From the NCBI RefSeq assembly GCF_000400465.1, contig NW_008806291.1:215925-247924 (forward strand): a stretch of 32,000 bases of DNA, given 5' to 3'. Shown here in pieces: positions 1-24,963 of this stretch (position 1 is the first letter of the stretch; each line of letters begins with the position of its first letter). This DNA is from Wallemia ichthyophaga EXF-994 (Eukaryota; Fungi; Basidiomycota). Below the pieces are notes generated by a model. It was not told the origin of the DNA. It ran no database searches and saw only the letters and a list, made by a program, of their open reading frames with translations. The position numbers were made by a program, and so were the translations under genes.

Positions 1-635
1 CACCATGACGCGCGAGACGGCTGCAATTGGGGCTTTTGAGGAGGTGAGAGTTTAGCAGATGAGCGGGTGGGCTAGAAACGCGGTCTATGCATCCAGGGAC
101 TATCTTTGGCGGGCCACCATCCACCACTATAAGCAGGCTGTTTGGTTCGAGGAGGATCGGCGTGGCTGAGACATCTGTTTGAGCTACGAGATGAGTACCC
201 AGTGTGAATGTGGCTGTCGTCGATTTGACACCCTGCGCGCACCCCTGGCCCGACTGGATAGCGTAGAGTTCTGCGTAGTTGGGATGCACTGCTGTGCACT
301 CCTCTATGCGCTGGTAGAGCGTATCCATCCAAGCCGGGGTGCTGCTTTGTATCAGTTTGCCGGTTCGGGTGAGTTGACCACCTGTTTGATTAGAAATTGA
401 GCAAATTTCGCAAATAAAGGAGAATAAACGGGAACACACCTATAAAGAGGTGCCTGTATCACTTTTTAATGTAATTTGGGCTTGGAAGTAGCGCTACCCA
501 CTTGTAACCGTCGTTGTACCGCCAGGATCGCTCAGTGATTGCTGAAATAGCCTCGAGAAGACCATCTAAATCGTGTCTGCTGAGCAAGTCCGGGATGTAA
601 ATCAGCCGATCAGAAACGAAATTGGCGGTGTTCAT
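1..635 (-). CDS. ALKBH6-like 2OG-Fe(II) dioxygenase-fold protein, apparently catalytically dead; 3' end runs off the window
   Basis: Not in the ORF track. Exons 635-502, 453-440 (14-nt micro-exon) and 381-<1, joined by GT-AG introns of 48 and 58 nt. Product: MNTANFVSDRLIYIPDLLSRHDLDGLLEAI...SWRYNDGYKHLFIGGQL...TPAWMDTLY...HPNYAELYAIQSGQGCAQGVKSTTATFTLGTH...ILLEPNSLLIV. It is colinear with ALKBH6 motifs as I recall them (YxPDFI, WGG, PxW, NHVLVNxYxPGxGI, TISLGSH, LLLEPRSLL). Confidence 0.75.
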
Positions 636-660
636 CGATGTTGGTGTACAAAACTTGGCT

Positions 661-696
661 GCGGCTGAGAGTGGCTGAGAGTGGCTGAGAGTGGCT
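661..696. repeat. 10-bp tandem repeat (GTGGCTGAGA, about 3.6 copies)
   Basis: gcggctgaga gtggctgaga gtggctgaga gtggct, inside the 65-nt gap between the prefoldin-3 stop and the ALKBH6-like ATG. Confidence 0.9.
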
Positions 697-700
697 ACTC

Positions 701-1357
701 TTACTCCTTCTCCTGCTGCTGCTCGACCTCCCTCTTCTCTCTCCTCCTCTTGACATCAAAGTTCCAGATCCTGGCTGTATTGACGTCGGTGATAGTTGTT
801 TGTTCCCTGATGAATTCCAAATCTTCATTGCACTGCTCGTACGAAACACCAGCCAGCTTCTCCTTCTTCTCGAGGAGCGCTATAGCCTCTGGTATTGTAT
901 AGCTGAGCATTGTATTTGCCTGTGTTTGCATATCAGTAGACGCATAAGGCTAACACACCACCCACACCCAACCACAGGTACACCACGTCGCTCTTGTCCA
1001 GCTCAGCCTCCGCGTAAAGCGTGTCGTGCAGCTCAAACAGCGTTTTTGTCTTTGTGCCGTCCTCATTCGCGCCGTGCAAATGCCTAACCATGGACAGCGT
1101 CTTGGAGATGTCCGGTATCTTGACATCGAGGGATTTCTTCTTTTGTAGAAGTGATATTTCCATGTATCTGTACTTGGATGCCATCTCCTGGAACTGCTTC
1201 AACGCGCTGTCCACCTCTGCGCCCTCTCCACCGATATATTCCACTACGTCGGCCTGTTTTCCATTTTTGATGAGATATCCACAGCGTATACGCTCTAACC
1301 CACCACAAACGGCGCTGCCGGAATGTTCCGCGGATTCGTTGAGACTGATTCGCTCAT
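701..1357 (-). CDS. PAC10: Prefoldin subunit 3 (alpha-type; VBP1/Pac10)
   Basis: Exons 1357-1304, 1253-966 and 919-701; introns of 50 and 46 nt; 186 aa. Motifs NPRNIPAAPFV, FQEMASKYRYME, FELHDTLYAEA, VYLWLGANTMLSY and LEFIREQTTITDVNTARIWNFDV. Confidence 0.96.
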
Positions 1358-1401
1358 TTCAGTTGGTCGTTCTTGTCGTTGACCCAAACCACCAAACCAC
1401 C

Positions 1402-2337
1402 ATGCCGATCAATTTTCTCTTTTTTCCTCCGCTCTACTGCCCAGTCGGCATCTATCGCTTGCTCAGTGATTCCCATGTTCGATCACCCATCTACTCGCTC
1501 TGTCGTAAGGGTTTGGCCACTGGGCTCATCACAGCGAGCGTCTACGTCCTTGTTACTTATCCGATACAGAATCGCCTGCTCAGCATTTACCTCAGCTTGT
1601 TCTACAGCACTCCCTCCTCACACCGCTTCTCTACGCTGATGCTTGTCAGCACCCAATTCACCGCCATTCTCCAGTTCTTCATCAACAAGCGCATCGCTCA
1701 GTCCCGGCGTCTCGCGTACTCCCTCACCATCCAATCCCGGGCTAAAGAAAACGCTTTCTGGGGCAAATATGTCGAGGAATTCAATCTTAACACTCCAGCT
1801 GGTCGATCGCTGCAAAATGAGGCGCTTAAGCAGGCAAAAACCAGAAAATCGGGCTGGAGCGGTTTGGTTGAGGGTAGAAAGCGCTCTAAAGCCCTCGCTT
1901 TGCTAATCAAACTCCTCCTCCTCCCCGTCGACGTCATCCCTCTTGTCGGCATCGTTATAGGTGCGACTCTCCGCTCTGTCGCCCTCACCAGACGCCTCCT
2001 CAAGCCATATTTCGCCGCGAAGAATATGTCCAAGTATCAGCGAGAAGTCTTCATCCAGCAGCGCTCTTTTGAGTTGAGGTGTGAGTCAGGCTGAATACGT
2101 TTTAACCGCCCAGTAACACCCCCTCCTCTCACAGCTTTCGGCTTTGCGGCTGCCTTACTCGAACGCACACCTTTCGTTGGCCTCCTCTTCTCCATATCTA
2201 CACCCATTGCTGCCGCTATGATGGCTGTCGACTTTGAAAAACGCCAAAACTCGCTTCGTTGCGTTCATGACGCTGATAAACCTCCTTGGGGGAGTGTACA
2301 CGTCGGTCACGCTATACCTCAGAAGAAAACGACATGA
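1402..2337 (+). CDS. EI24-domain membrane protein (Lds1/Rrt8-like)
   Basis: Exons 1402-2080 and 2135-2337, 54-nt GTGAGT..CAG intron, 293 aa. Motifs YCPVGIYRLL, FWGKYVEE, IPLVGIVIGATL, LKPYFAAKNM and FGFAAALLERTPFVGLLFSI...DFEKRQ. Confidence 0.8.
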
Positions 2338-2421
2338 ATGACTAGATGAACAAGAGTGGAAATGGGTGTGTAAATGAGAGATATTAATGATATCAAGGAG
2401 TCGCCTGGAATTTGCGCACAC

Positions 2422-3480
2422 CTACTTCCTAAACAGCTTCTTCCATCCTGAGACATGTTTCGTCGCTTTGTTATCAGGCACACTAATGCCATCACTAAAA
2501 GCCATAGACATCATTGGTTCAGGAATAGGGTATGCTTTCATTTTGTCCTGTTGTTGAGCCGGTGATGATTTGGATTTATGGAGCTGCTGGTGTTGCTGTT
2601 GCTTAAATGGATCGCTCATCAAACTCTGGCTTCGATAGCGGGGTTGATCCGACTGGACCACCTCAATTGCATCGATATCACCATTACCATCCACTCCCCT
2701 CTCCCTCCTATCTTTCTCCCGCTTCTCCCTCATGGCACTCTCGCTCGCAGTCATCTCCAGCCTAGCCAGAGCATCCGAGTCGCTCTTCTCCCTCGTCTCA
2801 GCACTCCTCTTAAACTGCTCCTGCAGCGCTACCTCGCGTTCTTTCTCCTGCGCCCTCTTCGCCGCCTCTTCCTTCTCTCTGCGTATGCGCTCGCTGCGCG
2901 GTGGCTTCGCCTTGGGTTTGCGCGGGTAAACGAGCTGACCATCGGCTGTTAAAATTGGGAGCTGAGACGGTGCGTCGAACCCCCACATACCGCCGCCCGT
3001 ATCCACAGGCGCTTTTGAGTGCACCTGCTGGATGATAATTTGTGGTTGTTGGTGTGTTTTTGTGTTGCTGTTGGTCGTGTTGCTAGTCACACCGCTGAAT
3101 ATCCCACTAGACATAGCCTTGCTCGACCGCCCACTGCTACCACTGCTGATACTGCGATTCGAGCTCATCTTTGCCGCTATCTCATCCTCCCTTCTCTGTA
3201 GCTCCGCTTTGGCTCGCGCGATGCTGTAACGTGTTAGCATCCCTTTGGCCCAGATCTCAAATCACCCAACTCACTCGGCCCATTCTTTTTCTGCACTTTT
3301 TGCTTCTTCTAACTCTTGCACATCTTGTGCTTCTTCCCAGTCAGTTGTAAACTCCCTCTGATATTGTGGGCTAATAAATCCATTTCGATTCTGGTTCATC
3401 TCCCTCACTTTCTCGGTGTGATGTTGACAATTACAGATAGCGGGGTGGTAGTACGCCTTGCAGCATGACATGGCTGTCAT
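2422..3480 (-). CDS. Hypothetical 335-aa coiled-coil/low-complexity protein
   Basis: The track ORFs 3271-3480 and 2422-3240 join in frame through a 51-nt intron at 3274-3224 (GTGAGT...GCTAAC...CAG). Charged helical segments and S/Q-rich tracts; no family recognised. Confidence 0.8.
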
Positions 3481-3822
3481 TCAACTGTCAGTTCATTCTG
3501 TTTTCAGGAACCACCCTTATCTGATGCTTGACAGGTCCAAGTAAATTTTTCATTTTAGTACATTTATTCATTAAATCAGTGTATTTTAATTGCGCCTGTA
3601 TATTTGTTCTTTCTGTCAACCACCCCTCTCATTTTCTGGTGACCAGCTTTTTGGTGTTCCGACACCATGCATTACTTTGCAGTGCATTACATAGATATAT
3701 GGCAAAATCAAAGTAACGTAAAAACTTATGATAATCTAAAGATGTGATACTTTCAAGGCTACACTCAAGTTGAAAGGAAACGAAATATAATCAAAATCAG
3801 TCAATACATCAAGACATGCCAG

Positions 3823-6157
3823 CTACTTCTTCTCAATCGCCCTATCGACGTTGAAGCAGGCTGAGATAAGAGAAACCGCACTAAAGCCCTGCGGATAATT
3901 ACCCAGGGCCTGTCCGCCCTTGCCAATCTCCTCACTCAACAACCCCAGATTGCTAGTATACCCCAGAAAGTCCTCGAGCATAACGACAGACTGAGACAGC
4001 AGCTTTTTGTCGTATGCACCAGCGCGACATAGTGCCTCACACGCCCACAACGTGCATAGCCCAAACGCTCCTTCCTCACCCCCAATTCCGTCATTCGCTT
4101 TCGTTACGTCGTAGCGCGATACGAGGTTGTTTGAAGTAAGCCCACCCTTTTCAGGTGATAATAAAACGTGCTTGAGTGTGGATAGCAGACGCGGGTCGGT
4201 GGGCGCGATGAAGAAGGTGAGGGGCATGATCAAGATGGAGCTGTCTAGCACATCTCTATTCTCGTAGCTCTGCGTAGTGAATTATTGAGAGGGCTTTCTA
4301 ATCCAATCTTTAAACATACCTGCGAAAAGAAACCTAACTGCTTATTGTACCCCTTCTCTTGGATTTCCTCATAAATGTTGTCTCTATTTTCGAGCCACTT
4401 GAGGCGATTGGGGCAAGGTAGGCATCTCTTGTCTGCAAGGCGCAGTCCGCGGTCGATAGCCACCCAGCACATGACCTGTGAGAGTAGTGAATTGTGTGAG
4501 TATGTTAAAATGTTCTGCAGTTTGCAAAATAACGCTTTTTCGCAAGTCGCATTTTGCAACTCAAACATTTGTAACATAACATACCTTGGAATACTAGTCT
4601 ATGTCAGCCAAATAATTCTGAAACACCCCACTCACCAAGAAATTCTGCTTCTGAGATCTAACCTCCCAAATAGAAAGATCTGGCTGATTCCATGCGTCGC
4701 AAACATAATCAACAAGCTTGCGCATGCCTACCCAGCAATCGTACGATAGCGGGTTAGCGTGTTTCTGAGCAAGATAGACGGCATCAAGGACAGCGCCGTA
4801 GACGTCGAGCTGGAGGTGGTCTGCTGCACCATTTCCAATTCTCACCGGCTTCTGTCCCCTGTGACCAGCTAGGTGGGGCAGCTCAATCTCTGGCATCTCA
4901 CGCTGACCATGGATGGTGTAGACGATCTGCAGACTACCGTCGCTATTTGGGTGCTCGAGCAGGGAAGCTATCCAGTCAACATACGCATTTGCCTCTTCTT
5001 TGAAACCGAGCCTGACGAGGGCGTAGACGGTGAAGGACGAATCTCTAAGCCAAGCATAGCGATAGTCCCAGTTCCGTCCCGCTCCGTGTAAGTCTTCAGG
5101 CAGGGAGAATGTCGGTGCGGCAATCACGGCACCTGTAGGTGCAAAAGTGAGCAATTTGAGCGAGAGTGCTGAGCGCAGCACTTGCTCGCGCCACCGCCCC
5201 TTGTACTGCATCTTGGCCGACCACTGGAGCCAGTACTGCGTTGTGGATTCGAGGAGGTGTTCTGTAGAAGCGAAGGTGGGGGATGTACTATTATCCTCTC
5301 TTTCCGACAAGACTAAAGTAACCACTTGGCCTTCGGAGAGTGAAAATTTTATACATACTGCATCGCCGAGGAAGCCGCGCTCAGCTGCATTGTGCGATGT
5401 TAATGATACCGCTGGATCTGATACCGCATCTGGTGCGCCGACAGTACAGCGCAAATCGAGATTGATGTGGTCAGGGCAGTCGAAGTAGGCCGTGTTGCTA
5501 CCGCTATCGACGCGCACGCTGTGCCCCGAACGTGCATAGTTGAATGCAGGAGCACATTCGCTGACAAACGACATTGTCCCGCGGAGACACTCGACGCGTC
5601 GAACGAGATGTGTGGGGCTGCTGAGGGGCATGAAATCTACCAGTGTGTGAGTATGTGAGTGTACACCTCTGTTCCTATCTCAGGCACGCACCGTCTACGT
5701 TAGCAACGGCTGTACCTGAATCAGATTGACATGCTTGATACGCTCCAACTCACCGTCGTCAGCCAGGAACTTTGTATTGAGGATGTTGGTCGATGGGAGA
5801 TACATCTGCTTGTTTACAGTGGCTGTTTGTGGGTCAATACTCCAATGACCGCCCCTGCAGTGAAAATTTTAGCCCAAATTATCAGCGTGAGAAGACCCGT
5901 CTGTTCACAAGACTTACTTCTTCACATCAACAATGCGCGCAAAGATACTGTGGTGTGTTAACGCTGCTTTTATTTATCAGATATTCACCTGAGCCAACTC
6001 ACCTAGGGGAATCGAAATAAGGCATCGAGAGCTGAGCAGTGGTACAGTTCGACGACACTAAAGCCGCAGTCATGCAATTACCTATCACGCCATGTTCTTC
6101 AATATCCGTTTCACGCTCGTGGAAGCTTAGTTTGCTATTGGATGTTTGAAGAACCAT
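3823..6157 (-). CDS. Glycoside hydrolase family 15 protein (trehalase/glucoamylase-like, with trehalase-type N-terminal domain)
   Basis: Exons 6157-6003, 5947-5918, 5854-5754, 5715-5692 (or 5694-5692), 5636-4636, 4593-4585, 4475-4320 and 4269-3823; about 640 aa. Motifs IEEHGVIGNCMTAALV, PYFDSPSIFARI, AAPTFSLPE, RNWDYRYAWLRDSSFT, HLQLDVYG, IWEVR, YSKVMCWVAIDRG, EGAFGLCTLW, LLSEEI and GNYPQGFS. Confidence 0.94.
4500..4584 (-). other. Imperfect inverted repeat (long hairpin) inside GH15 intron 4476-4584
   Basis: Complementary blocks: 4500-4507 with 4577-4584 (8 bp), 4508-4514 with 4564-4570 (7 bp) and 4522-4530 with 4551-4559 (9 bp); 20-nt loop at 4531-4550. Confidence 0.8.
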
Positions 6158-6339
6158 CGCAGTTGAAATCAAGTCAAGTAAAGTGATTAAGAGTACTATT
6201 AAATCGACTAGGTAATACAAAGAACATGAAATGCTTACAAGAAACGTACAAGATCTGCTGTTTGCAATGGAGATTATTTTCTTTACATGGGAGTGCAAAG
6301 GTCGTGAGGTGAGGATCCAATTCTATACTACATTGAGGG

Positions 6340-7509
6340 CTATAAAGAATGCGGCGAGTGAGCACTAGGACGTCGTTCGCTGCTAGTAGAGGGGCTCAAA
6401 ATACCCAGACCGACGCTGTCGCTAGGGCTAGGATTAGACCCCAAGAGGCTGAAGTTGGTGTCGACGGAGAGATTCATTGGCCTTTGGCTGTGTGCCTGCG
6501 GGGTGTAGTGCGATGAGCCCAGCGATAGCGGCGATAGTGGCTGTTCCATTCTAAACCCGCCACCATACTCGGACGCATACGGCGACGAATGCGTGCTGTA
6601 GAGATCGGGTATGGGCGAGCCTGCGCTGGATGGACTTGGCGAGTAGGGATACGGAGGGATAGTGGAGTTAGCCGCGTTTGTAGCGTGTGTTGAGGTGTCT
6701 GGCGAAGTGACGAATATCGGTGGCTGGGCGGGTGGTGTGGGTTTAAGGGGAAAATGGCTATTGGTGTTACCTCCGGTGGTGGCGTTGGTGTGAGCACCAC
6801 TGCCAGTGTCCATACCATCACCACCTCCACCACTGCCACTCCAGGGGTAGTCAAACGGCAAGCCACCATGCGTACCGTAGAGAAAGGCGTAAAGCTGCTT
6901 AACGACATCCTTCAGACACTGCGTCTCGCCCCGCGAATGCTCCAGCTGCTGCTCTAGAAAGAGTACACGCTGGTTGAGGGTGGCTATGGACTGGTTGGAC
7001 TGCGACTGGCTAAGCTGGAGGAGGGCGACGGAGGAAGGGAGGTCTGTGCTACGTGCTGCGGTGCTTGTAGACGTACTGGCCTCTGCGCCGTCGAGTACCT
7101 TTCTTTTGATGTCTTCGAGCAGGTCCTTGCGCCCTCTGAGGAAGTTGGGGTGGGAGAACTCCCACACTTGGTGCTCTGGGTGTGCCTTTTGCCCGCGTGG
7201 CGTCTTGTTGCACTTATGGAAGCCATACATATTCAGCTGCCTGACAAAGGAACTGAAATTGGAGTGCTTGAAATGGGTAGGCAAGATTTCCGAAGAGAAG
7301 AGAGAGAGATTGGCAACTATAAAACTATCGCCAGCCAGATTCCACGAGATTAGATTGTTGGTGTTGGCGTCGACCATCTCGTACAGCTTCGGGACGAAAG
7401 ACGAGCTAGCGCCCTGCTTTGATTTCTTGGAAGCGTGCGGCGACTCATCATCGGATAGCACCGAATTATCCCTTTTTATCTCATTTTTGTTCGGCTGCAG
7501 GAGGTCCAT
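6340..7509 (-). CDS. HSF-type DNA-binding transcription factor (no receiver domain; Sfl1/Hms2-like rather than Skn7)
   Basis: First in-frame ATG at 7509; 389 aa. HSF domain FVPKLYEMV...ISW...F...LPTHFKHSNFSSFVRQLNMYGFHK...WEFSHPNFLRGRKDLLEDIKRK, then a coiled coil and an S/P-rich tail. Confidence 0.93.
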   Translation of the reverse strand: MDLLQPNKNEIKRDNSVLSDDESPHASKKSKQGASSSFVPKLYEMVDANTNNLISWNLAGDSFIVANLSLFSSEILPTHFKHSNFSSFVRQLNMYGFHKCNKTPRGQKAHPEHQVWEFSHPNFLRGRKDLLEDIKRKVLDGAEASTSTSTAARSTDLPSSVALLQLSQSQSNQSIATLNQRVLFLEQQLEHSRGETQCLKDVVKQLYAFLYGTHGGLPFDYPWSGSGGGGDGMDTGSGAHTNATTGGNTNSHFPLKPTPPAQPPIFVTSPDTSTHATNAANSTIPPYPYSPSPSSAGSPIPDLYSTHSSPYASEYGGGFRMEQPLSPLSLGSSHYTPQAHSQRPMNLSVDTNFSLLGSNPSPSDSVGLGILSPSTSSERRPSAHSPHSL

Positions 7510-7549
7510 GGTGGTTGGAGTAGCGAGAGTAACGCGAATAACTCGATTA

Positions 7550-7945
7550 ATGGATTTGCGGACGTGAGCGGGAGTTGAAGCGCGGGTCACACGATAACAA
7601 ACGTAACACAGCCTAGATGAGCATGTCCTAAATTATCTCAATAGGCGGGGATACTCGCAGACCGTTGAACTGCTAAAGTTGGAGGCGGGGCTCGTGGTAA
7701 ATGCCGACGATAATTTTCTATCAGAGTGGTTCCAGGTGCTAAACGAGTGCAAGCAGAGCGAGGACTTTTCAAACCACTCCACCCAAGCCAAAACCAACCA
7801 ACTCCAAGATTCGTATCAGTTGCTCGCCATCGAGCAGAGGAAATTGCACAAAACACAGTCAATTGAGCAGGATAAACTCAAGACAATAGCCAGCAGATCA
7901 TCATCCACTAATATCCCCAACCCGCACAATTTTTCAAGCGAGTGA
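7550..7945 (+). CDS. Small LisH/LUFS-like protein (~115 aa)
   Basis: Exon 7550-7563, 48-nt intron (GTGAGC...GTAAC..CAG), exon 7612-7945. Product: MDLRTLDEHVLNYLNRRGYSQTVELLKLEAGLVVNADDNFLSEWFQVL... A LisH motif is followed by FLxEW, as in Flo8/SSDP LUFS domains. Confidence 0.7.
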
Positions 7946-8399
7946 GTTGCTATTATGAGGTTTCACGGTGCGCATGTATTCTATACACTTTTGTTCTTTG
8001 TGCTTGTACTCTATGCATGGTATTTGGCCCGTATGTGATGCTCTCACGATGAAGACAATTTCTCGTGCGCCGTTCCATGCCGTCCAACGAACGTGCATCC
8101 CCCCATTGAACGTGCGCTATTAGACACTCAATTAATGCACATGATTATGGCATCAACTGAAATTCTACGCCAACTAGTGAAAGTAAATAAGTGTACTCTG
8201 CCCTCTACGTTCCTCCATTGCCAAATGCGATTCGATGGCTAGTCTGTCTTTGTTTCTCAGACAGAAAAGCTTAAAGTTCAGCTTAGTATTTGACTTATTA
8301 TTCAAACGTGTTTAAATGTTGATTTTCAACACTTGTAGATTTTGAGCAGAAATTGTGACATTCGAGGGCTTGTTTGGGTATACTCTTGCGGCTCAAGTA

Positions 8400-9901
8400 T
8401 TCTTTGAGATGGTACAAATTTCCTTAAGTTGAGCACTGCATCTCATTCGGTATTTTCACAGCTGTTCAGATTTGCAGATCGAAAATCCATTCGGTGCTGC
8501 TCTAAACAATCAGATTATCTCACAATATCAATCACGCATATTCCCACGCGTAATATCATATCCCATACAATAAGAATTGTTTCAATCAAGCAAGCATTAT
8601 TATTGAGACATTCAGAAGCACTACTCTCCCTCTTCGTCTCGAAAAGTCTCGAGCTTCCTCGAAGCTTTTTCAAGAGTGTCAAAGAAGTTAAAGAAAGACA
8701 TTCATGCATTCGATCTTGTTGGCAGCTATTTTTTGGAGCATTGGGTGGGTTTGAATAAACCTAGACAAAGCAATATCATCGACAAGATTATCTTCATTAG
8801 CCAAATTCAGCTCTTCAAGCTTGGTCATTATAAATTAAAGCAGCCTTCTTTAAAATTTTTGTAGAATTCAGAGGTGATTTGGTTTTTGACACTGAGAATT
8901 TTCACGTTTGAAAGCTTCGCATCTCTCGTGAGATTCATCATCTCATTACCTGCAGTGAGCAATGGCTCTCTCATGTCAATCTTGTGGAATTTCACTGACA
9001 GTCTCGCCCATCCTGAAATTTCACCTCCAGAAATGCAATTTAACTGCGTCAAATCTGGCAAAGAACGGTTATTGAGAGCTTTTCCAATCTTATTTGTTTT
9101 GATAGAATATAAATTAAGCATCTCGCAAGGCAAATAAAGCTTCGGACGGTTTGTTTCAGTTCCTGAGACCAGTGAATCGTCGTAAGTAACTTCAAGCGCA
9201 GTGAGATTAGGCATTAGCTTGAGTAGAAGCTGAGCGCTTCCTAACGAATGAAAATTTCTATTGCTGTGTTTTGAGCAGGGTCTTTTTAGTCTGATGAATT
9301 GGGAATTTTGGTTTCTGAATGTTTCAAGAGACTTCGCAAGTATACTCATGTCCATCAGAGTATCGCGTAGGTCTTCGCTGTAAGTTTCTGGCATGATTTG
9401 CTGCGATTCAGCTAATAAGATAAGTTTCCTGCATTTGAGATTTCTTGATATCTTGAGGTTCGAAGTCTTCCCTGATGCATCTGTATCTTCCAGAGTAAAG
9501 CGAAAATTGTAGACAAACAAAGTGGACAAACCATCTTCGTCTTCGCATAGCATTCCATAACAGTTTTTTCTAGCCATGAGTGCCAAATGACCGACTATCA
9601 GGGCATTCCTCTCAGGTGCCGACAGCGAAGCCTTGAGCTTTCTTACCTCAAAACTCCTGTCAATGAACCAGGAAGACGACGAGTAGACTTATCCAGATAC
9701 TTAGCATCTACATTGAAAGATTTTAATGTAATACTTGCCGTGATAATGAAGCATGGCTGCCCTCCAGCGCCGGTTAATCAATGACAGATACTAGATAGTC
9801 ATGACAGAGAATGTTTCAGGGCTATCCTGGACAATGAGATCGGATATTGATTGAATTAGCTCTGAGAAAAAATTGGAAGCGTTCAATTTGATAGTTGACA
9901 T
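8400..9901 (-). pseudogene. Decayed F-box/leucine-rich-repeat-like gene
   Basis: ATG at 9901: MSTIKLNASNFFSELIQSISDLIV...*YLSLINRRWRAAM (F-box-like end, in-frame TAG). Frameshifted pieces follow, including the 252-aa ORF 8828-9586 (LLLKLMPNLTALEV, SLPDLTQLNC) and MTKLEELNLANEDNLVDDIALSRFIQTHPMLQKI (RNI/LRR-like). The 3' end is approximate. Confidence 0.65.
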
Positions 9902-10055
9902 AAGATTGAATTGGTGCGAGAGTGTGAGAGTGTGAGAACGTGGAAGTACGTAAGTAGAAGTGCGAGTAAATGAGATTATCAACCGGTAAATATGGTCTGC
10001 TATACTTTAAATGACATACTTGTAATAATCACGCGTGCGCAAAATTCACCTCCAA

Positions 10056-12273
10056 TTATTGAAACATACCAGGCAATGAAGCAATCAATCCAATTACAGT
10101 ATGATGATACCTATCAAAAAATAACTGCGATCTGAGATTACCATCGTAATAAAGTGGTAGAGGACAGAGTTCATGATGCGTTGATTGTTTTTCACTTGGA
10201 TATTTTGTCATTTTCAAGATTTTCCGTTGGCCTACGATATCTCGCCAATGGTTGGCGGGCTTGGTTGAATCTGGTAAGCTGTCAATAGAATTCACTGAGT
10301 CTTTGTCGATCTAGTTGTGAGACGACTGAATGATTTGTCAAAGGTCCTTTCAAGGGGAACATGTGAAATTGACTTTGATGCGGTTCATTGCCTAAGAAAT
10401 GGATGAAGTCTGGTTGAAATTTGTAGAAAAAGAAAGATGCCCATGTCCCTGATTTGCAAATTACTATCGTAGTCAAATCATTTTCATGGCGAATACATTC
10501 TGATGAACTTCTTATAAAAATATTTTGCTTTAAACCGTTTCCCCGATTTATTATTCTCTTTTGCATAATCAACCTCTTTGATATGTGTGTTGATGAGGTG
10601 TAGATATTTAGAAAGGAGTCTACCAAAAGCTCCCTTCAAAGTTCCTTTATATGTTTTGATACGACGTTCAAAAGGAGAGAAAAGAAGTCGTCAAAGAAGC
10701 ATATTTCATTCTTTTTGATGAATTTAGATAGCCTGAAATCTCTAATTCTGAGTGACAGCAGATTCTGAAGCTTACGTAGCCTGCCGGGAACGTCATGGCC
10801 AACATATAGAACTGATTGGACACTCCTAAGCCATAGGCTTATAAAGGAAACTTATCGATAGCGTAGGATTTTTTTCCCCAGCTATAATTAAAGTTGTCTT
10901 GATCCTTGATTTGTGGCTTTGTAGTGATCTGCTTCGTGAACCGTCCAAATTAATCTTTGTTTTATCAGCGCTCAAATCCTTGAGGTTGCTTGTTCCACCT
11001 AGTGATTCTAACACGCCTGAATAAGAGCATATCAAGCCAGCTGGACTAAGAAGAGACGAGTGTTTTGTAGGTGGCGTCTCAAAATCCGCTTGTTATTTTC
11101 GGCCTTGAAAGTCTACGGTAAATACGAGATTTTCAAGCTTCTTTAATAGGGCTGGATTTGGTATGTTGATGTGCCTAATGTCATGAGGAGATGCATAAAT
11201 GTTCATAACATTAGAAAATGTGAGATAAAATGTGCTAAATAATGAAAGGGGCAGCTATTCGGTCTTTGGGTGTGGTTGAATCGGTGGCATATCATGATTG
11301 AAATCCTTGAATTATGGTAATCGGCTGATGGAAAGTTGAGACATCGAAGCAAGCAACAATATCACTTCATCTCGCTCAGCTACTTGGTAATTACAGATAT
11401 TTCAAACGACAATATCTCGCGAATGATTGACCATTCCAGTCAGTGGCACATTGTGCACGTCGTTAAAATTTGGCCAACTGAATACACCAATAAATGATTT
11501 CTGTGCATTGTTGAGCTCGATTATCATTGCTCTAATATCTGCTTCATTAAATGTTGGCTCCAACCATTTCCTGAGTCTAATGCAATCTCTTCCATTTTTG
11601 CAGACTGGTCCTTAGCTATAGATAATGTGCTTAATTCCTCTAAACCTAAGTACTTTATTATCGCGTATTTATTTGTTGATTCCATGGATGGAAATAAAAC
11701 CTCCCGGTCATCAAATCTTGTAGATATCCTGGAAACATCGAGATTAACCAGGTTCTTAAATTCCTTGACTTTTTCACGTAGCCCACCTTCTTCAACATTA
11801 ACAACAGAGGATGAATGATACTCTATAAGAAAACTCGGCGTAAATGATCTCTTTTAAAAACCTGTTTGTTAAGCAGGGCTTGAACCATCTCAGACAGTTG
11901 CTCTAAAATCTCAACGTGCTGGAATATTGACATAGTCGCCTTCTAGTCCCTAATTCTCAAGTGAATCAGTAACGATGGCAGCTTCACACTCCCTCCTATG
12001 TATCCAAATTGAGTTTTCACAATCCTCTTCAGTACGCTCGTGGTCAGTAAGATCACCTTTGAACGCTCCCGTTCCTTCTTTCTCTAAGATTCCCTAAGTA
12101 AGACTCCTAATCTGAGTCTTCCTCAAACTGAATATGTGGCTCGTACTCTGATTTAGAGTTATGGTCAGACTCATTGTTAATACAGGCTATTGCTCCAAAT
12201 CTTCTGGCTCTGTATCTGATTCCAGACTTTAAGTCTTGTTTTCAGGTGTCATCTCAATGATTTTGCGTTTCAT
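10056..12273 (-). pseudogene. Second decayed gene: acidic N-terminus, then possible F-box-like and LRR-like fragments
   Basis: ATG at 12273 gives MKRKIIEMTPENKT*SLESDTEPEDLEQ* (stops at 12231 and 12189). Protein-like fragments in shifting frames: SIFQHVEILEQLSEMVQALL, KEFKNLVNLDVSRI, ALLKKLENLVF and LRKLQNLLSLRIRDF. The 3' boundary is approximate. Confidence 0.55.
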
Positions 12274-13218
12274 AGTGGTCTGCAATTTAGCTTATAGGCG
12301 TGCCGGAAAAAAGCCAAAGAGTAGGAAAAGGATGAGAAAAGAAAAAGGAAATTGGGCTTGGTCGCATTGGTCGCAAATAATGGCTGCCTGTCACATGAAC
12401 GCAATATCTAAAACCCACTTAACGCGCACCTACACGAACTTTAGAGAATGCTCTCACCGATGACACGGCTAGGTCAAATTCCACGCAAGATACTGGTCAG
12501 ATATATCCGCGGCTGTACGAAAACGTCCAGTAGAATCGCGGCCAAAGTGCGTAGTATGCGATTGATATAGACGAATACGGAACATAATAAGAGTGGCGAC
12601 TACATATACACTCTTACGCCAGCAGGTTGAAACATGATAAGCCGATTTTTGGCAAATTTTCAACTGATTTCTGCTGCTACGCTCCTCCTACCAAGTACTT
12701 TGCCTCAATCGATGATCAAATGGCAAATAATTATAGAAGCAGACTGACTATACACAACGACTGGTCATTTCCTACATGTTCAATCACAAACATTAACCGT
12801 ACTTGTGGATCCAAGGCGTCAATTGAGCAGTAACGTCAATTTACAAACTAGCGAATCAACATTAGTCAAACACTTCAGAAGCAGTGACTTTACACGATTC
12901 TGACTTTCCCAGTCGACGTTGTGATGGCGAATTTAGGCACTTTCATCTTTTGCAGAGACTTAATATTGGTCCAGGTGTTGACGCTGTTTTTAGTGCTGAT
13001 TTATTTACTTTGACTTAATCTCTCAAATTCATTACTCAAAGTGATTATCATCGTTCATTTATGTTTAATAGGTATGATGCATATCTACTAATCCTTTTGT
13101 ATGCTGTCTTCATTAAGCTTAATACATGACAATTTACTTACACCAGTATATTTAGAAAAAACTGTAAATCATTCATAAGAAACTAACAAGAAATCCAGTG
13201 ATAAGACCACTCGTGCAT

Positions 13219-13654
13219 CTATTGAGAGAGTTCAGCAGCCTTCTTGACGAATCCTTGAAGCTGTGAGTGTTGTGAGAAAGGAACGAGAAAGAAATGAGAA
13301 GAAAAGGTCACCGACCATTGGAGGAGCAGCACCGCTAAACGAGTCCTTCTTTTCACCGTCTTTGAACAGGTAGAAAGTAGGCATAGATCTGATGGACAAG
13401 TGTTCGGCTATGTCGCCAGCTTCATCAACATCAAAAGATGCAAACTGGACCCCAGGTGTGGACTCAGCGAGTTTCTTAAATACAGGAGCAACGAGCTTGC
13501 ATGGCGCGCACCCGCATTCGCGTTTTAGCTCAATTCGGTGTGATTTTGGGCCAACTTACCAATCTGCCTCCGCTTTGATGACCGTTGGCTGGTTTGAGCC
13601 AACAAACTCCATGAATTGGTTTAATGAGCCAAGGTGGACTACTGGATCGGACAT
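13219..13654 (-). CDS. Thioredoxin (WCAPC active site); intron 1 acceptor is non-canonical
   Basis: Exons 13654-13560, 13511-13316 and 13260-13219; 110 aa. Product: ...VIKAEADWCAPCKLVAPVFKKLAE...FDVDEAGDIAEHLSIRSMPTFYLFKDGEK... Intron 1 ends in CGG instead of CAG. Confidence 0.88.
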
Positions 13655-14235
13655 GGTTGATTAATCTGCGATGGTTTGGGTTCAAGCCGTGATAAAAGAG
13701 TCAGATCACGTAATCGCAGGATAAAAAATAGACTTAAAGTGAGTGTGAGCTTTTAATTTCTACAAATCTGCTAATATAGATAAGATGGATTGATTGAAAG
13801 CGTGGTTTCATCGTCATCTGCAGTTTCGAGAGAGTTGGAGTGATGATGCAGTTGCAAGTACATCGCATAATGCAGGCGGTTGAGGTGAGATGAGAGCGAT
13901 AAATAAGAGTGCATCTTTCACGGCTCAAGCAGGGCTATGCGTCGAACGTTTTACTTTGACATTACCAGAAGTATTGCATGTCATCCGAGAAGCTGACACA
14001 AAGCGGCGGATATTGAGTGGGTCAATGATTTAGAAGTGTAGTTGGAGCGATTACATGACTTCGAAAGTAAGGGCGCTGTTGTTTTGCCGTTGATCGCGCT
14101 ATGACGTAGATGTGCATCAATAACAGAAATGGATGAGATATTCTCGCTCAAGAGAATTTGTCAAAGATCTGCATAACATGAAGCAAATTTGTATCAATCA
14201 TTAATACTCGTACATTAAATACACTGCGCTTAAAC

Positions 14236-15411
14236 TTAGAGCTTGTTCTCTGAAAGCAAGTCTGTGCAGGCCACCTTGACACGCTCGACGATTGCCTTTT
14301 CACCCTCGCGGACCCCTGCAGAAAAGTTAGATAGGCTCTAAACGGTAATGATATAAACTTGCAAACTCTTGGGTCGAAAACCTTTTTGTTTGGTTTGTCA
14401 GCTTTGTGATGGTTAGTACTTTCGTCTGAAGGGCTATGACCGTGACTAACCTCCTTCTGGGTTACCAACTTGTGTCATAAGGTAGTCCTTCTTGTTGAGA
14501 ATGTAGTCACGGTGACCACAGAGGTAAGCCCATTGGACATCAGTGTCGACGTTCATCTTGACGACACCGTTGACGACAGCAGTCTTAATTTCCTCCTTGC
14601 TGGAGCCGGAGCCACCGTGGAAGACGAGGAAGAGTGGCTTCTCGTGCTTGCTGGAGGATTGCTCACGAGCGTACTTTTGGTGGTCTCCGAGGATCTCAGG
14701 GGTGAGCTTGACGTTGCCTGGCTTGTAAACACCGTGGACATTACCGAAGGCCGCGGCGATAGAGAAGGATGGGGAGATGGCGGAGAGGGCCTGGTGGACC
14801 TTGTAGACCTGCTCTGGCTTGGTCATAAGGCTGGAGGCGTCGGCGGACTCGTTGTTGACACCGTCTTCTTCACCACCGGTGATACCGATCTCCATTTCGA
14901 GCCATTGGCCCATCTTGGCCATGCGGGAGAAGTACTTGACGCAGGTGCTGATGTTCTCCTCGTCAGACTCCTCACTCAAGTCAAGCATGTGGGAGGAGAA
15001 GAGAGGAACGCCGTTGACCTTGTAGTAAGCCTCGTCGGCATCGAGCATGCCGTCGAACCAAGGGAGGAGCTTCTTGGCGCAGTGGTCAGAGTGGAGGATA
15101 ACTGGGACACCGTAGAGAGGGGCGACGGTGCGTACGTGGTGGGCGAGAGCGACCGAGCCGGCGACAGAGGCCTGCTGCTTGTCGTTTGGAAGACCCTTAC
15201 CAGCGAGGAAGGCACCACCGCCGTTGGAAATTTGGAGAATGATTGGGGATTTGATGTCGCGTGCAGCCTCGAGGACAGCGTTGGCGACGGAGGAAGAGGT
15301 AATGTTGACGGCTGGCATGGCGTACTTGTTGGCGCGGGCGTGTTCAAACAACTTGAGGGCATCGACGCCGCTCAAGACGCCTGGTTGTACAACTGAGAGT
15401 GCTCCTGACAT
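14236..15411 (-). CDS. FBA1: Fructose-bisphosphate aldolase class II
   Basis: Exons 15411-14451, 14401-14363 and 14315-14236; 359 aa. Motifs HSDHC, SSHMLDLSEE, EMEIGITGGEEDG, AAFGNVHGVY, VFHGGSGS, KMNVDTD and DPRVWVREGE. Intron 2 is GC-AG. Confidence 0.98.
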
Positions 15412-15457
15412 AATATTTAGATGATGATGGTTTGGGAGAGAGGGGCGATGCGCTGGC

Positions 15458-15463
15458 TTTATA
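15458..15463 (-). promoter_or_regulatory. Probable TATA box of FBA1
   Basis: TATAAA on the minus strand, 46 nt upstream of the FBA1 ATG, followed by a pyrimidine-rich leader. Confidence 0.5.
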
Positions 15464-15526
15464 CTCCAAATGAAAAATAGTTGACATCAATTGGGTGAGT
15501 GGGATAATCCAATGACTTAAGAATTG

Positions 15527-15651
15527 GCGTGGGTTGGGCGTGGGTACAGCGTGGATCTGAGTGGTTGGATTGCGGTGAATATGCATACCTCATTATCGCT
15601 GCTCGCATCTGCGGTATTGAGTCTTGTTGGGGATCCACGGTGGATCCACGG
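15527..15651. repeat. 11-bp-phased CCACG-core motif arrays upstream of FBA1
   Basis: GCGTGG at 15527, 15538 and 15549; GGATCCACGG at 15631 and 15642, which also form the palindrome GGATCCAC-G-GTGGATCC. Confidence 0.7.
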
Positions 15652-15881
15652 GGATTCTTGGGATTGGTGGAGTGCGTCGATGAAATAGCCATACATACGA
15701 CCCAATTCGACCACTCAATCCGCTCATTTTAATGTCTTCCTTTTGTGAATTTGGTATTACGTCATATCCAGATAATTTCTATGACTTTCGTTGGGTTACG
15801 GGAGGTGGAAAGTAGCTTGAAGGGGAATTGCGTTGAGATTTCCATTTCGTTTGTTGTTTGACTCTTTCACATCCAATCAAA

Positions 15882-16345
15882 TGTTTAAACGGTTTGAATT
15901 GGTTGTCGTCGGTATTTCTAGCTACCCGCACGAACTGATGATGCAATATTTGAATCACAGGATTTAATCGGGAAAATATCTAATGAATGCATTCAATGTG
16001 CTCCAAACGTGCAATTAAACGTGGGTGATAATCGCTCGAACTGCCCTGAGAAAGATGAAAGAATACTTGTACATGATCACATTGAGTATGTTTATATTGG
16101 CTGTTCATGGCCGTTGATCTATGTGCTGTATTTTACCCCTTCAAATCCCCATTATACAGCATCTCAACCGTCTCAACGCGTTTCACTTTCTGTAACGCGT
16201 AGAAAGTGGTCTATAAGCAGTAAATAGGCTAACAACGTCTACATATGCAGCAGAAATAGTTTTATTGTTTAAATAAGCTGAATTGGATCCATCCAATAAA
16301 TGCAGTAAACGCGATTTTGTTGTCGGTATTTCTAGCTATCCGCGC
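15882..16345. repeat. Duplicated ~50-bp non-coding element in the FBA1/Sds3-like divergent spacer
   Basis: Identical 17-mer GTCGGTATTTCTAGCTA at 15908-15924 and 16322-16338. Each copy is preceded by TGTTTAAA-N5-TGAATTGG (15882-15902 and 16266-16286). Confidence 0.8.
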
Positions 16346-16754
16346 AAACCAACTGAATACACGGAAAGCTTTGAGGATGAGTAGCTGAGCAGATGTATTC
16401 ACGCTGTTAGCCGCGTGAACAGGAACGAGGATTGCGGATTCGTGAAACACAACAAATTCAAGGCACTAGCCACGTGCTTGTCGGCCGCTACTGTGTTATT
16501 TAAGCAGCCCACATTTCTTCCCTCATTCCCCTACGGTTCGCCGTCTTGGGAGCCTAGTAAAGCGGGTATAACCCTTTCACCGTAAATAGTCTGCGCTGCT
16601 CCCAGTAAGCTTGATTTTAACTCGTTCAACTATCTCAACCCTTCAATAAGACCTGGTATTCCGTTTAAAGTCCCCTTTGAGCGATAATCCTAGAACATTT
16701 GCTATCATCACTTGGTCTCTCTAACCTCAACCACCAAGACGAGGCAGTCCGCAG

Positions 16755-18097
16755 ATGAGCACATCAAGCCTCAGTTCACCAGAATCATCGCGCGGGAGCG
16801 ATAAGATAGTTGTAAATTTCCACGATAAGGGCGCTACCAAGGGATTTAGCGATAGCGGTTCAGAAGCCTCGACTCAACCGCTCAGCAAATCCAGCAGCGA
16901 GCTGTCGGAGCCACCCGAGGATAGAATAAAGGCGGAGGAGGCTGTGCATCCTGCCATCGCCCACGAACCCACTCTCGCTTCCGCTCTCGATCCAATCCCT
17001 TCAAACATTCCGCACGAGCTGGCTATGGATCCCCCGCCTGAAGCTGTCGCAGCGCCTACAACTGAGAAAGAGGTCGGTGCTGGTGAGGCGCTGATTGACA
17101 TGGCGGTGGATGGCGAGGCTGAGGAGGCTGAGCCGGGCGAGAAGGTTGAGGAGCAACTCGAAAAGCAGCAGCTGGACGAGGAGCAAGACCAAGACGAGGA
17201 GCAGCACCCCGCAACAAACCCGCCACCAACCGAACATGAAACACCTCAACCCCCCTCGCCCTCACCCTCACATTCACACTCACATTCGGACGAAAACACA
17301 CATGCACACACTGCCACAACGACGGGCACATCCACAGCATACCACGTCGACGACGAGCGCGAAGATGCCCTCGCCCACCTCACCAAGCTAGAGATAGAAT
17401 TTGCGATGCTGCGCAATAAGCTTTATGTGGAGCGTATGGAAGACGTAGGGCGGGAGAGTGCGATGATCGCAGATGGCACACACCCCGAATTACAGCATCT
17501 ACACACTATACTCGCTCAAAGACGCGATACACGACTCTCTCTCGCCAGCATAAGGTTGAGGAAGCTCGAGGAATCGCACAAAACCACTTTTCGCGCTGAG
17601 CAGACCGCTGCCTGGACTAACTGGGTTGAGGGCGTGAAGCAACTCCACTATGGGCAGGGTGACAAGGTCGAGAGTGGCAGCTATGGTTGGGGTGGTGGGT
17701 TGCAGGGCAACGATAGGAAGAGGAGGAGACTCGAGAGAGAAAAGGAGGCGCTCGAGGTGCCTAAAATCCTTCAACGGCCGCCCATTGCTCACCTCGCCAT
17801 CAAGGCTACTCAACAGCTCGCTTCACTCCCACCCCCTCAATCCACGGCAAGTAAAAACAAAAAACGCGGCAGATACCCGAGGAAAGACCACATCAACCAC
17901 GATAAACAGAAGGTGTCGATGAATAATTGGCACGATCTCAATTCCATGTTCGGTGAGCCGTTGAGTAGTATTGAGGATGTCCAGCTGGCGAGGCAGGCTG
18001 TGGACGAGGATATGATGGCGATGAATGTGGGTGGTGTGCGTGTGGTCGGTGCGCAACTAACCCACAGACAGGATCGACAGCAGGAACTCCACGTTGA
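16755..18097 (+). CDS. Sds3/Dep1-like Sin3-HDAC complex subunit
   Basis: LAHLTKLEIEFAMLRNKLYVERM...IADGTHPEL coiled coil typical of the Sds3 family, after an acidic N-terminus. A probable 41-nt intron at 18027-18067 (GTGGGT...CTAAC..CAG) gives a stop at 18097; unspliced, the stop is at 18152. Confidence 0.85.
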
Positions 18098-18196
18098 AAC
18101 GGAAACAGACCACAGCAGACTAATGCAATCCAGCCATCCGTCGCCGTTGTAATGTAACGAAATATATGTGATATTAGTACCCCTTGCACCTCGACA

Positions 18197-21198: not shown

Positions 21199-22467
21199 AT
21201 GACGACGATAACGATACAAAACAAACACTTGGCTCTCGGCGCAGCCTCGCTACTGCTCTCCTTCCACCTTTACAGGCTGGTAGGTGGTCTATTTGCAAAC
21301 ACGCCGCCGCCAGCCCCGAGTCACGGCTACAGCGTGCGCGTGGAGCGTGGTCTGGGCGGTATTGAACGCGACAGCGACACCGCTCGCGCAGTTGATGAGG
21401 TTTATCCGCCCGATGCCTTCCCCGGCGGCGGCGATGTTCGTCTGCCACACGGCCGCATCAAGTACTATATACTCGGACCTCAAGAGGGGGAGAAGGTAGG
21501 TGTGGATGGCGGAGAGAGCGCCCGATATCCCCCTCTCACACCCCACCGCAGATCGTCCTCGTTCACGGCTTCAGCTCGCCCTGTATCATCTGGCGCGAAC
21601 TCGCAGTCAGTCTCGCAGGAGCTGGCTATAGAGTGCTCATGTATGATCACTACGGGAGAGGCTATAGTGACCATCCCATCGTCGAGTACTCAGGTGCCCT
21701 CTACACTTGCACCCTCGCACTCCTCATGCACCACGTCGGCTTTGCAAGAGCCACGCTGTGTGGTTTATCGATGGGCGGGCCAATTGTCGTTAACTTTGCG
21801 GATGTGTTCCCGGATATGGTCAATAGCATCATCCTTCTCGCCCCCGCTGGCCTTATGGACGACGCACCATTCACAACAGCCCGCTCGATCGATCCTAAGA
21901 GCTTCATTGAGGCGCCACATTGGCTCAGACGTATCTTGAAACCTTCTGGGCCTGCCAATTACAACGCAAGTGAGATGCCAGATAATCTCAGAATGCTCGC
22001 CAAGGTGAGTGAGACATTTACGCAAATCACTCAGCACTCACCGCACACCACCTACACACCAGATGTCAGCTATACAGGGCCAGCGCACGCCTTTCGTTCA
22101 CGCCCTGCTGTCCACCCTGCGCGAAGGGATACTGTTTAACCAAGACGAGGTGTTCAAGGCGGTGGGCAGGCGCGGAAGGAGGGTGCATATAGTATGGGTG
22201 GGTTGTGTATGATATGGCGGCCGACACTCTCACCCAAAATTTCGCAGGGCACCGCCGACAATATTGTCCCCTACTCGCTCAGCAAGCGTATGCTAGAGTG
22301 AGTGGGCTTTTACTCTCGCCACTCTCGCCACTCACACCGCTCACTCACGCAGGTACATGCCGCAAGCCTCGCTCGACACCATTGTGGATGGCGGACATGA
22401 CCTCGCCATCACCAATGCCGACCACGTCCACCGCTCCATCGTTGCGTTTATGAAGGAGCAATCGTAG
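21199..22467 (+). CDS. Alpha/beta-hydrolase with N-terminal membrane anchor
   Basis: Exons 21199-21495, 21552-22004, 22063-22197, 22248-22297 and 22353-22467; 349 aa. Motifs VLVHGF, YDHYGRGYSD, GLSMGG (nucleophile), WGTADNIVP (Asp) and GGHDL (His). Confidence 0.92.
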
Positions 22468-24521: not shown

Positions 24522-24963
24522 TTCATCGTCGACGTGCGTATTAAAGGAATGTAGTCCCTTCACTCCGAGTTTCTCCGGATGAAATGAAAATCTTCATTAA
24601 ATCTAATAAATACAAATTATTTTCTATACTTAATGTTTGTTAGTTTGTGTAACGAACCAAACACCCCCTCAACACTCCCACAATTAAAATCAGAAACGAG
24701 CGAATTCCGTGATATGCAATTTGACTTCATGGATCTCAGTGGAAAGATGAAACATCATTTGGTATTTTGTGTAGTGTTGAGTGGGTGCATATATCATTCA
24801 ACTCACCTCATCGACGTACGAATTTAAGAAGGAAGTCACCCACCAAAAATTATTTATGCCAATCCAGAAAATAAAATCATCTTAATTAAATTTTATTTAA
24901 ATTTACTTATTTATTTATTTCTTCATCTCATTTCCTCACCCATCTCCCCTCTCTCCCCCCACC

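Follow-up and report, generated by a model that had tools for sequence, protein, structure and literature searches.

We analysed a stretch of 32,000 nucleotides from contig NW_008806291.1 of Wallemia ichthyophaga EXF-994 (positions 215,925 to 247,924 of the forward strand; GC content 47%), referred to below as the window. On its minus strand lies a gene for a trehalase-like enzyme of glycoside hydrolase family 15 (GH15), which contains a micro-exon of nine nucleotides and, directly downstream of it, an unusually long intron (intron 5) that forms an imperfect palindrome. An earlier note on this DNA had proposed that the resulting hairpin hides the 5' splice site of its own intron and serves as a temperature- or salt-sensitive splicing switch or, alternatively, that it is the footprint of an inverted-repeat element. 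The comparison presented here points, with modest confidence, to a species-specific insertion that is tolerated by the gene.

Our own model of the GH15 gene consists of a TREH_N-like N-terminal domain and a glucoamylase-type catalytic domain encoded by eight exons (Table 1), and its spliced frame was open when the micro-exon was included. The protein matched Pfam families PF00723 (Glyco_hydro_15; E=2e-73, 248 bits, residues 253-629) and PF19291 (TREH_N; E=3e-12, 46.7 bits), in both cases exceeding the cut-off, in agreement with the host enzyme assigned in the earlier note. The best named homologue was a glycosyl hydrolase of Wallemia mellicola (70% identity), and a distant match in the PDB was isomaltose glucohydrolase. 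The WE motif of exon 4 is, from general knowledge of the family, what we take to be the GH15 general acid (catalytic-acid motif), and the YSK tripeptide encoded by the micro-exon lies 13 residues past it. The spliced model and the span of PF00723 confirmed that this exon belongs to the catalytic domain and can be skipped in frame, as had been claimed, and retention of intron 5 leads to a stop after 7 codons. It also held that intron 5 is about twice as long as usual: the remaining introns of the gene measure 38, 42, 50, 55, 55 and 63 nt, and the mean intron length reported for the species is 61-68 nt (PMC3849046, PMC6738226). TTCAC is the likely branch-point motif of intron 5, because the sibling introns have CTNAC or TTCAC motifs 7-13 nt from their acceptors; it sits inside AATTCACTAC, a 10-mer that is present again in intron 6 (4274-4283). 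An alternative branch candidate, CTCAC at 4496-4500, directly adjoins the hairpin.

Table 1. Features of the GH15 gene in the window. The window coordinate of a nucleotide of intron 5 is 4585 minus its position in the intron.
Feature	Coordinates	Strand	Description
GH15 gene	6157-3823	minus	Own model, 8 exons (6157-6003, 5947-5918, 5854-5754, 5715-5692, 5636-4636, 4593-4585, 4475-4320, 4269-3823), 640 aa
Second micro-exon	5692-5715	minus	24 nt, TAVANVD; flanked by 38-nt and 55-nt introns
Exon 4	4636-5636	minus	1001 nt; 3' end SIWEVRSQKQNFL; holds WE motif
Intron 4	4594-4635	minus	42 nt, GTGAGT...CTGAC...TAG; 5' of the micro-exon
Micro-exon	4585-4593	minus	TATTCCAAG (Tyr-Ser-Lys, YSK), 9 nt, phase 0 on both sides
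Intron 5	4476-4584	minus	109 nt, GTATGT...CAG
Imperfect palindrome/hairpin	4500-4584	minus	Intron positions 1-85
Basal 8-bp stem (register A)	4577-4584 with 4500-4507	minus	5' arm = donor GTATGTTA (positions 1-8), partner TAACATAC
Tandem duplication TGTTA-TGTTA	4572-4581	minus	Intron positions 4-13; 5' end reads GTA-TGTTA-TGTTA-C
Middle 7-bp stem	4564-4570 with 4508-4514	minus	5' arm AAATGTT (positions 15-21)
Apical 9-bp stem	4551-4559 with 4522-4530	minus	5' arm TTGCAAAAT (positions 26-34); 20-nt loop 4531-4550
Likely branch-point motif TTCAC	4487-4491	minus	Branch A 4488 (intron position 97), 12 nt from the 3' end
Exon 6	4320-4475	minus	Begins VMCWVAIDRGLRLADKR

Public gene models are wrong at this locus. 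The annotations of W. ichthyophaga strains fuse the HSF gene, the GH15 gene and a downstream gene (the latter inferred from the model length) into one product of 1308 aa, at about 2422-7509 of the window on the minus strand. The public Wallemia hederae model over the GH15 region is likewise a single one of 1192 aa, exceeding GH15 alone (3623-8350 of the fetched locus), and in W. mellicola the gene is split into models of 116 aa and 591 aa (2463-5092 of the fetched locus).

The 24 Watson-Crick pairs in three stacked stems described in the earlier note were recovered as perfect inverted repeats of 8, 7 and 9 bp, and the complete minimum-free-energy hairpin has 37 pairs, 2 of them G-U. When the two arms were aligned, they agreed at 28 positions and differed by four insertions or deletions (indels of 6, 1, 1 and 1 nt), with zero substitutions outside the apical loop. 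The hairpin had a minimum free energy of -27.5 kcal/mol and a z-score of -3.75 (-3.4 to -3.75 across runs); 14 of 5000 dinucleotide shuffles folded as well, and 16 of 5000 did so with G-U pairs forbidden (p about 0.003). In a sliding scan of the 32 kb with segments of 85 nt, it ranked 6th when G-U pairs were allowed and 1st, narrowly, with Watson-Crick pairs only (z -3.75 vs -3.67 and -3.59). The antisense strand folded nearly as well as the sense strand (-25.2 kcal/mol). The indel-only difference between the arms, the all-Watson-Crick perfect stems and the nearly equal antisense fold point to a palindrome that arose at the level of DNA, with a statistical excess that is moderate and not overwhelming. 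The top hairpin of the scan with G-U pairs allowed lies at 2501-2585 on the plus strand (z -3.8, -33.6 kcal/mol), antisense to a coding open reading frame at 2422-3240; refolded on both strands, it proved to be strand-specific and G-U-dependent.

In order to place the intron among its orthologues, we used the assemblies of W. hederae (GCA_004918325.1) and W. mellicola (GCA_004918075.1). The W. hederae locus was reached via its LisH neighbour and is syntenic over prefoldin, EI24, GH15, HSF and LisH. A population study provides 21 W. ichthyophaga genomes together with that of W. hederae (PRJNA527765; PMC6738226), and an open reading frame of the window at 16755-18152 had an exact match in nine NCBI assemblies (GCA_004917895.1 and its siblings). 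The strain loci fetched through the Sds3 open reading frame end at position 6756 of the window. The micro-exon and both flanking introns were present in W. mellicola (TACTCAAAG; intron 4 of 46 nt, intron 5 of 49 nt), W. hederae (TACTCTAAG; 51 and 57 nt) and Lentinula edodes (TACTCGAAG; 61 and 52 nt). In Rhodotorula toruloides the micro-exon is fused, intron 4 is absent and intron 5 measures 55 nt, and Cryptococcus neoformans, Ceratobasidium and Basidiobolus have neither the micro-exon nor introns 4 and 5. YSK itself occurs in homologous proteins across fungi. The micro-exon and the phase-0 position of intron 5 are thus ancient, since both are common to W. hederae, W. mellicola and L. edodes, and the position also to R. 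toruloides. L. edodes has, at 3100-3320 of the fetched locus, a 12-nt micro-exon (GTTATGCTATGG, VMLW) directly after that for YSK, two in a row in the catalytic domain, and at the place of the second W. ichthyophaga micro-exon W. mellicola reads IAVANVE.

The large hairpin was not found in intron 5 of W. hederae, W. mellicola, L. edodes or R. toruloides, and what makes the W. ichthyophaga intron longer than these orthologues is the palindrome itself. Among the introns compared, the hairpin is specific to W. ichthyophaga. The earlier note had looked to related introns for conservation of the pairing; no conserved form of the big hairpin emerged from the four orthologues, and W. hederae has a 9-bp donor stem of its own, which is described below. 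The micro-exon architecture is dispensable: in Wallemia-like contigs (ENA KERN20-1 metagenome scaffolds; Logan ERR3209915), whose protein is 86% identical around the site, NFLYSKVMCW is contiguous in a fused exon and introns 4-6 are absent, other short introns being retained. A protein-guided metagenome scan returned relatives at 49% identity or less only, mostly bacterial. A short query across the micro-exon brought up no W. ichthyophaga cDNA, only genomic sequence of the intron-less relative.

Change within the species was assessed with one Logan contig (SRR25394091) that is 98.64% identical to positions 1-16591 of the window. This second lineage keeps the hairpin, with 4 changes in the 109 nt of intron 5 (3.7%), all of them within the hairpin: A8G, which turns a Watson-Crick pair into G-U, C68T and A69T in the middle stem and internal loop, and a 1-base apical deletion. 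The other introns of the gene differed at 3 of 303 nt (1.0%), its exons at 12 of 1923 nt (0.6%), and the adjacent intergenic DNA at 1 of 182 nt (0.55%) and 3 of 439 nt (0.68%). With these changes the hairpin has a poorer fold (z -2.17). A change of 3.7% that is concentrated inside the hairpin, together with the weaker fold of the variant, tends to speak against purifying selection on it, of which these small numbers give no sign.

The window also contains a 6-kb AT-rich island at 8000-14000 (GC 37-42% vs about 50% in the flanks), where divergence from the same contig is 2-5 times that elsewhere (10-22 differences per 500 bp). Its sole long open reading frame is at 8828-9586 on the minus strand, and the NCBI strain annotations call no gene there; the equivalent place in W. 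hederae, next after the LisH gene, is taken by a UCH gene of 912 aa.

With regard to the claim that the hairpin sequesters the donor, a perfect 8-bp repeat of the donor does exist, but the register in which it pairs is not the favoured one. Register A, with the donor paired (G1-C85), had a predicted free energy of -26.5 kcal/mol and pair probabilities of 0.08-0.21. Register B, in which the second TGTTA copy (positions 7-13) pairs with 4501-4507, reached -27.5 kcal/mol and 0.58-0.92. The two are nearly isoenergetic, and B leaves GUAUGU outside the main helix, where the donor would form four weak pairs only, with CACAC farther downstream. The cost of opening the donor at 24 °C was predicted at 4.2 kcal/mol for positions -2 to +6 and 11.5 kcal/mol for positions -2 to +10, compared with 3.9-15.6 and 4.0-19.9 kcal/mol, respectively, for six sibling introns; the upper value of 15.6 kcal/mol belongs to intron 3b of the same gene, with strong predicted donor pairing. 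The mean pairing probability of donor positions 1-6 was equalled or exceeded in about 53-55% of shuffles and in most sibling introns, and it was therefore dropped as non-discriminating, with the length of the perfect stem and the opening cost being used in its place. According to these models, the donor of intron 5 is not unusually occluded, and the dominant structure leaves it largely unpaired.

The predicted free energy of the hairpin was -49.3 kcal/mol at 10 °C, -37.1 at 25 °C and -20.9 at 45 °C, so that it does not come near to melting over this range, and the probability of the donor register shifted only from 0.00 to 0.13, the balance between registers being nearly constant. The modelled hairpin thus lacks the marginal stability expected of an RNA thermosensor. 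The splicing-switch reading found no support from conservation, evolutionary rate or in-silico accessibility: orthologues lack the hairpin, it changes fast, its donor has an ordinary opening cost and no melting is predicted between 10 and 45 °C. A version of it is kept alive by the stem in W. hederae.

Intron 5 of W. hederae, GTGGGAGTGAACCAAGAACGTATGTCACTCCCAATTTACACTACTACCCCCTTCTAG, forms a perfect 9-bp stem, TGGGAGTGA/TCACTCCCA, over donor positions +2 to +10 (U2-A10 with U25-A33; -13.8 kcal/mol, z -2.56). This stem is unalignable with that of W. ichthyophaga and lies just 5' of a CAATT..CACTACT stretch which both species have in common; 5 of the 7 aligned pairs are changed on both sides. 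A perfect donor stem of at least 9 bp was found in 1 of 2579 GT-started 57-mers of the W. hederae locus (0.04%; this one is probably intron 5 itself) and, among self-shuffles, in 57 of 20000 (0.3%), values that need an approximately fourfold correction, W. hederae being one of four orthologues inspected. For the 8-bp stem of W. ichthyophaga the frequencies were 0.5% of GT-started 109-mers and 1.1% of self-shuffles. About 80 heuristic candidate introns yielded no donor-covering stem above 7 bp, nor was such a stem found in the orthologous introns of W. mellicola, L. edodes and R. toruloides. A high cost is predicted for opening the donor of W. hederae (14.4-17.9 kcal/mol). In the loop of this stem, at positions 20-25, stands a consensus-like GTATGT, the stem itself covering the weak true donor GTGGGA; use of the GTATGT would shift the reading frame.

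The donor consensus GTGAGT and the branch-like motif ACTCAC are reverse complements of each other, which makes donor stems of 5-7 bp common in Wallemia. Candidate introns with a 6-7-bp donor complement near the branch region include 22005-22062 (plus strand), 22271-22348 (minus) and 24781-24867 (plus), and the complements seen were GTGAGTG with CACTCAC and GTGGGTG with CACCCAC. A donor complement of at least 6 bp occurred in 9 of 42 heuristic candidates vs 3-5% of random GT-started segments, the selection of candidates being itself biased in that direction.

We consider it probable, though with modest confidence, that the hairpin is a self-folding palindromic insertion in an ancient intron, specific to W. 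ichthyophaga and tolerated there, and not a dedicated salt or temperature switch. Intron 5, ancestrally a phase-0 intron of normally about 50 nt, would have gained an imperfect palindrome of about 60-75 bp in the W. ichthyophaga lineage, by inverted duplication, by hairpin-templated repair or by insertion of a small inverted-repeat element. Once transcribed into pre-mRNA, the palindrome would form a hairpin of about 31-37 bp, with about 70 nt looped out, and the distance from donor to branch region would thereby stay near that of a normal short intron. The AU-rich basal stem would have to breathe for spliceosome assembly, and the TGTTA duplication may allow the helix to slip by one register, a cheap way of releasing the donor. 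Tolerance of the hairpin would be due to its folding out of the way and to the release of the donor by the register shift. As a roughly neutral passenger of a constitutively spliced intron, it would cause at most slightly more retention of intron 5, with the premature stop that follows.

Several points weigh against this account. Constitutive splicing of intron 5 is an assumption in it, and some inhibition by the hairpin is plausible, given that a predicted 13.6-17.3 kcal/mol is needed to free the donor linker and 20 nt 5' of the likely branch A, with the upper hairpin staying in place, and that the basal and middle stems fall outside the spacing rules derived from yeast. The perfect 9-bp stem over the W. 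hederae donor means that donor pairing recurs in two sister species, a suggestive pattern that could mean selection in this clade. It is on this that a regulatory reading would be built, in which selection in the W. ichthyophaga/W. hederae clade favours pairing of the intron 5 donor with the segment just 5' of the branch point. Such occlusion would delay or tune binding of U1 at 9 nt from the upstream acceptor, and would order the removal of the two flanking introns or tie inclusion and retention to temperature or ionic strength. In its favour are the presence in both sister species of perfect donor-covering stems of at least 8 bp that differ in sequence, the rarity of such stems by all the counts given above, the costly opening of the W. 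hederae donor, and a precedent in the mini-exon of potato invertase, for which cold-induced skipping is reported (Bournay et al. 1996, as cited in PMC8483784). We nevertheless regard it as rather unlikely, since three of the orthologues have no such stem, the favoured register in W. ichthyophaga leaves the donor nearly free at an ordinary opening cost, and the interior of the hairpin changes quickly between lineages. Moreover, the Wallemia-like relative does without both introns, the downstream intron of the gene's other micro-exon has no donor-covering stem (S=0), intron 3b is also strongly donor-paired, and the p-value for W. hederae needs the correction mentioned. The more specific proposal that clade-selected pairing orders or paces removal of the introns 9 nt apart, with the TGTTA shift as release and GH15 output possibly varying with temperature or ionic strength in this obligate halophile, seems to us decidedly doubtful. 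The 2013 transcriptome study of W. ichthyophaga reported one exon-skipping event genome-wide (PMC3849046), and the GH15 peptides were not among the genes listed as differentially expressed between 10% and 30% NaCl, which is weak evidence as it concerns expression level and not splicing.

The alternative suggestion of the earlier note, the footprint of an inverted-repeat element, stays closer to the sequence, the arms being Watson-Crick and differing by indels only, but no second copy came to light in the sequence searched. In this form, a miniature inverted-repeat transposable element (MITE), or an introner-like, symmetrical proliferating intron, would have landed in or replaced intron 5. The palindrome does have imperfect terminal inverted repeats (TGTTAC-AAATGTT / AACATTT-TAACA) with TA on each side (GTATGT-TA-[...]-TA-CTCAC), although TA is trivially frequent; about 85 kb of DNA transposons are reported in the W. 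ichthyophaga genome (PMC3849046); and an intron longer than the regular ones and strongly self-complementary recalls introners (PMC3609843, PMC8469720). Neither the 32-kb window, 544 kb of fetched loci nor the Joint Genome Institute (JGI) metagenome contigs, these last scanned for the exact terminal-repeat pattern, held another copy, and the ancient position of the intron argues against an intron gain, so that we judge this origin unlikely. A simple MITE with TA duplication was put aside, as it implies an empty intron of 33 nt, shorter than any in the gene, and a new intron of introner type was rejected, the phase-0 position after YSK being occupied in four other species. That intron 5 is simply an ordinary long intron, its self-complementarity of no special origin, is improbable in our estimation. 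For this speak its only marginal lead among the palindromes of the window and the number of introns in the genome, about 11,800 (PMC3849046), among which p about 0.003 per intron leads one to expect a few dozen such hairpins by chance, a figure that also tells against the tolerated insertion. However, the extra length over four orthologues coincides exactly with the palindrome, and arms matching over 28 positions with indels only are not the pattern of random complementarity. Finally, the excised intron might be a small-RNA precursor, either a mirtron-like or milRNA hairpin or a substrate of RNase III, as a stem of about 31-37 bp with a 20-nt apical region is reminiscent of pre-miRNA-like hairpins. 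This we hold to be very improbable: Rfam, searched at E up to 10, gave no match over 4476-4593, conservation of the hairpin ends with the species, and its interior changes quickly. Candidates such as a small nucleolar RNA, microRNA or tRNA were rejected after the Rfam search and an ARAGORN search, in which no tRNA was found in intron 5.

If the tolerated insertion is the right explanation, intron 5 is an ordinary example of a fungus with short introns tolerating a palindrome that folds away, and also a dated snapshot of it, with a hairpin that is shared by two lineages of 1.4% divergence, that the sister species lack and that is decaying by indels. It comes together with a 9-nt catalytic micro-exon of a fungal GH15 enzyme that is common to Wallemia and an agaric and was lost in other lineages. 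Were the minority reading of a regulated donor true, the locus would offer, in the most halophilic of all known fungi, a natural system for the coordination of splice sites with 9 nt between them.

Among known systems, the introner-like elements of Capnodiales (PMC3609843) and the sister introns of Hypoxylaceae (93 nt, PMC8469720) share with intron 5 a length above that of their neighbours, imperfect terminal inverted repeats and a stable predicted hairpin. Their repeats also reach from the donor to the branch or acceptor region, and their symmetry decays by indels and substitutions while splicing is kept. At 109 nt against 38-63 nt in the rest of the gene, intron 5 has the length and symmetry of an introner, but its position is not newly gained. 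Those elements are multi-copy, occupy new positions and belong to ascomycetes, whereas intron 5 sits at an ancient position in a basidiomycete, with no second copy in the limited sequence searched.

Hairpins that sequester a donor inhibit splicing, as in the autoregulation of yeast RPL30 and in MAPT exon 10, and artificial donor-sequestering hairpins reportedly did the same in the hands of Goguel, Wang and Rosbash in 1993. In intron 5, register A pairs all eight donor nucleotides, but the favoured register is predicted to free GUAUGU and the opening cost is ordinary. For the micro-exon, the closest counterpart is the mini-exon of plant acid invertases, which has 9 nt and encodes part of a catalytic motif. 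Like the YSK exon, it lies in the catalytic region of a glycoside hydrolase, is long-conserved and can be skipped in frame; the two differ in family (GH32 vs GH15) and in kingdom (plant vs fungus).

The zipper stems of Saccharomyces cerevisiae, known from RPS17B, RPL7B and others (Rangan et al. 2025, PMC12350175; PMC12311795), offer a comparison that favours the tolerated insertion through the apical stem. The spacing rules obtained by modelling in yeast call for minimum distances of 10 nt and 20 nt and a linker total of 42-85 nt (PMC12350175). The apical 9-bp stem, from +26 to 63, ends 34 nt before the likely branch A and leaves linkers of about 25 and 33 nt (about 58 nt together), which fits these rules if the branch point is the one inferred. 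No other stem does so: the middle one (+15 to 77) and the basal one (+1 or +7 to 84/85) both break them. Zipper stems in yeast belong to introns of 400-500 nt, whereas the helix of W. ichthyophaga reaches or covers the donor on one side and on the other stops 12-13 nt short of the likely branch A. As in yeast, the hairpin of intron 5 (positions 1/7 to 84/85) is a helix placed between the donor and the likely branch A (position 97), where it may shorten the effective distance between them. Zipper stems also resemble this hairpin in that their sequence is little conserved and that closely allied species may have or lack them.

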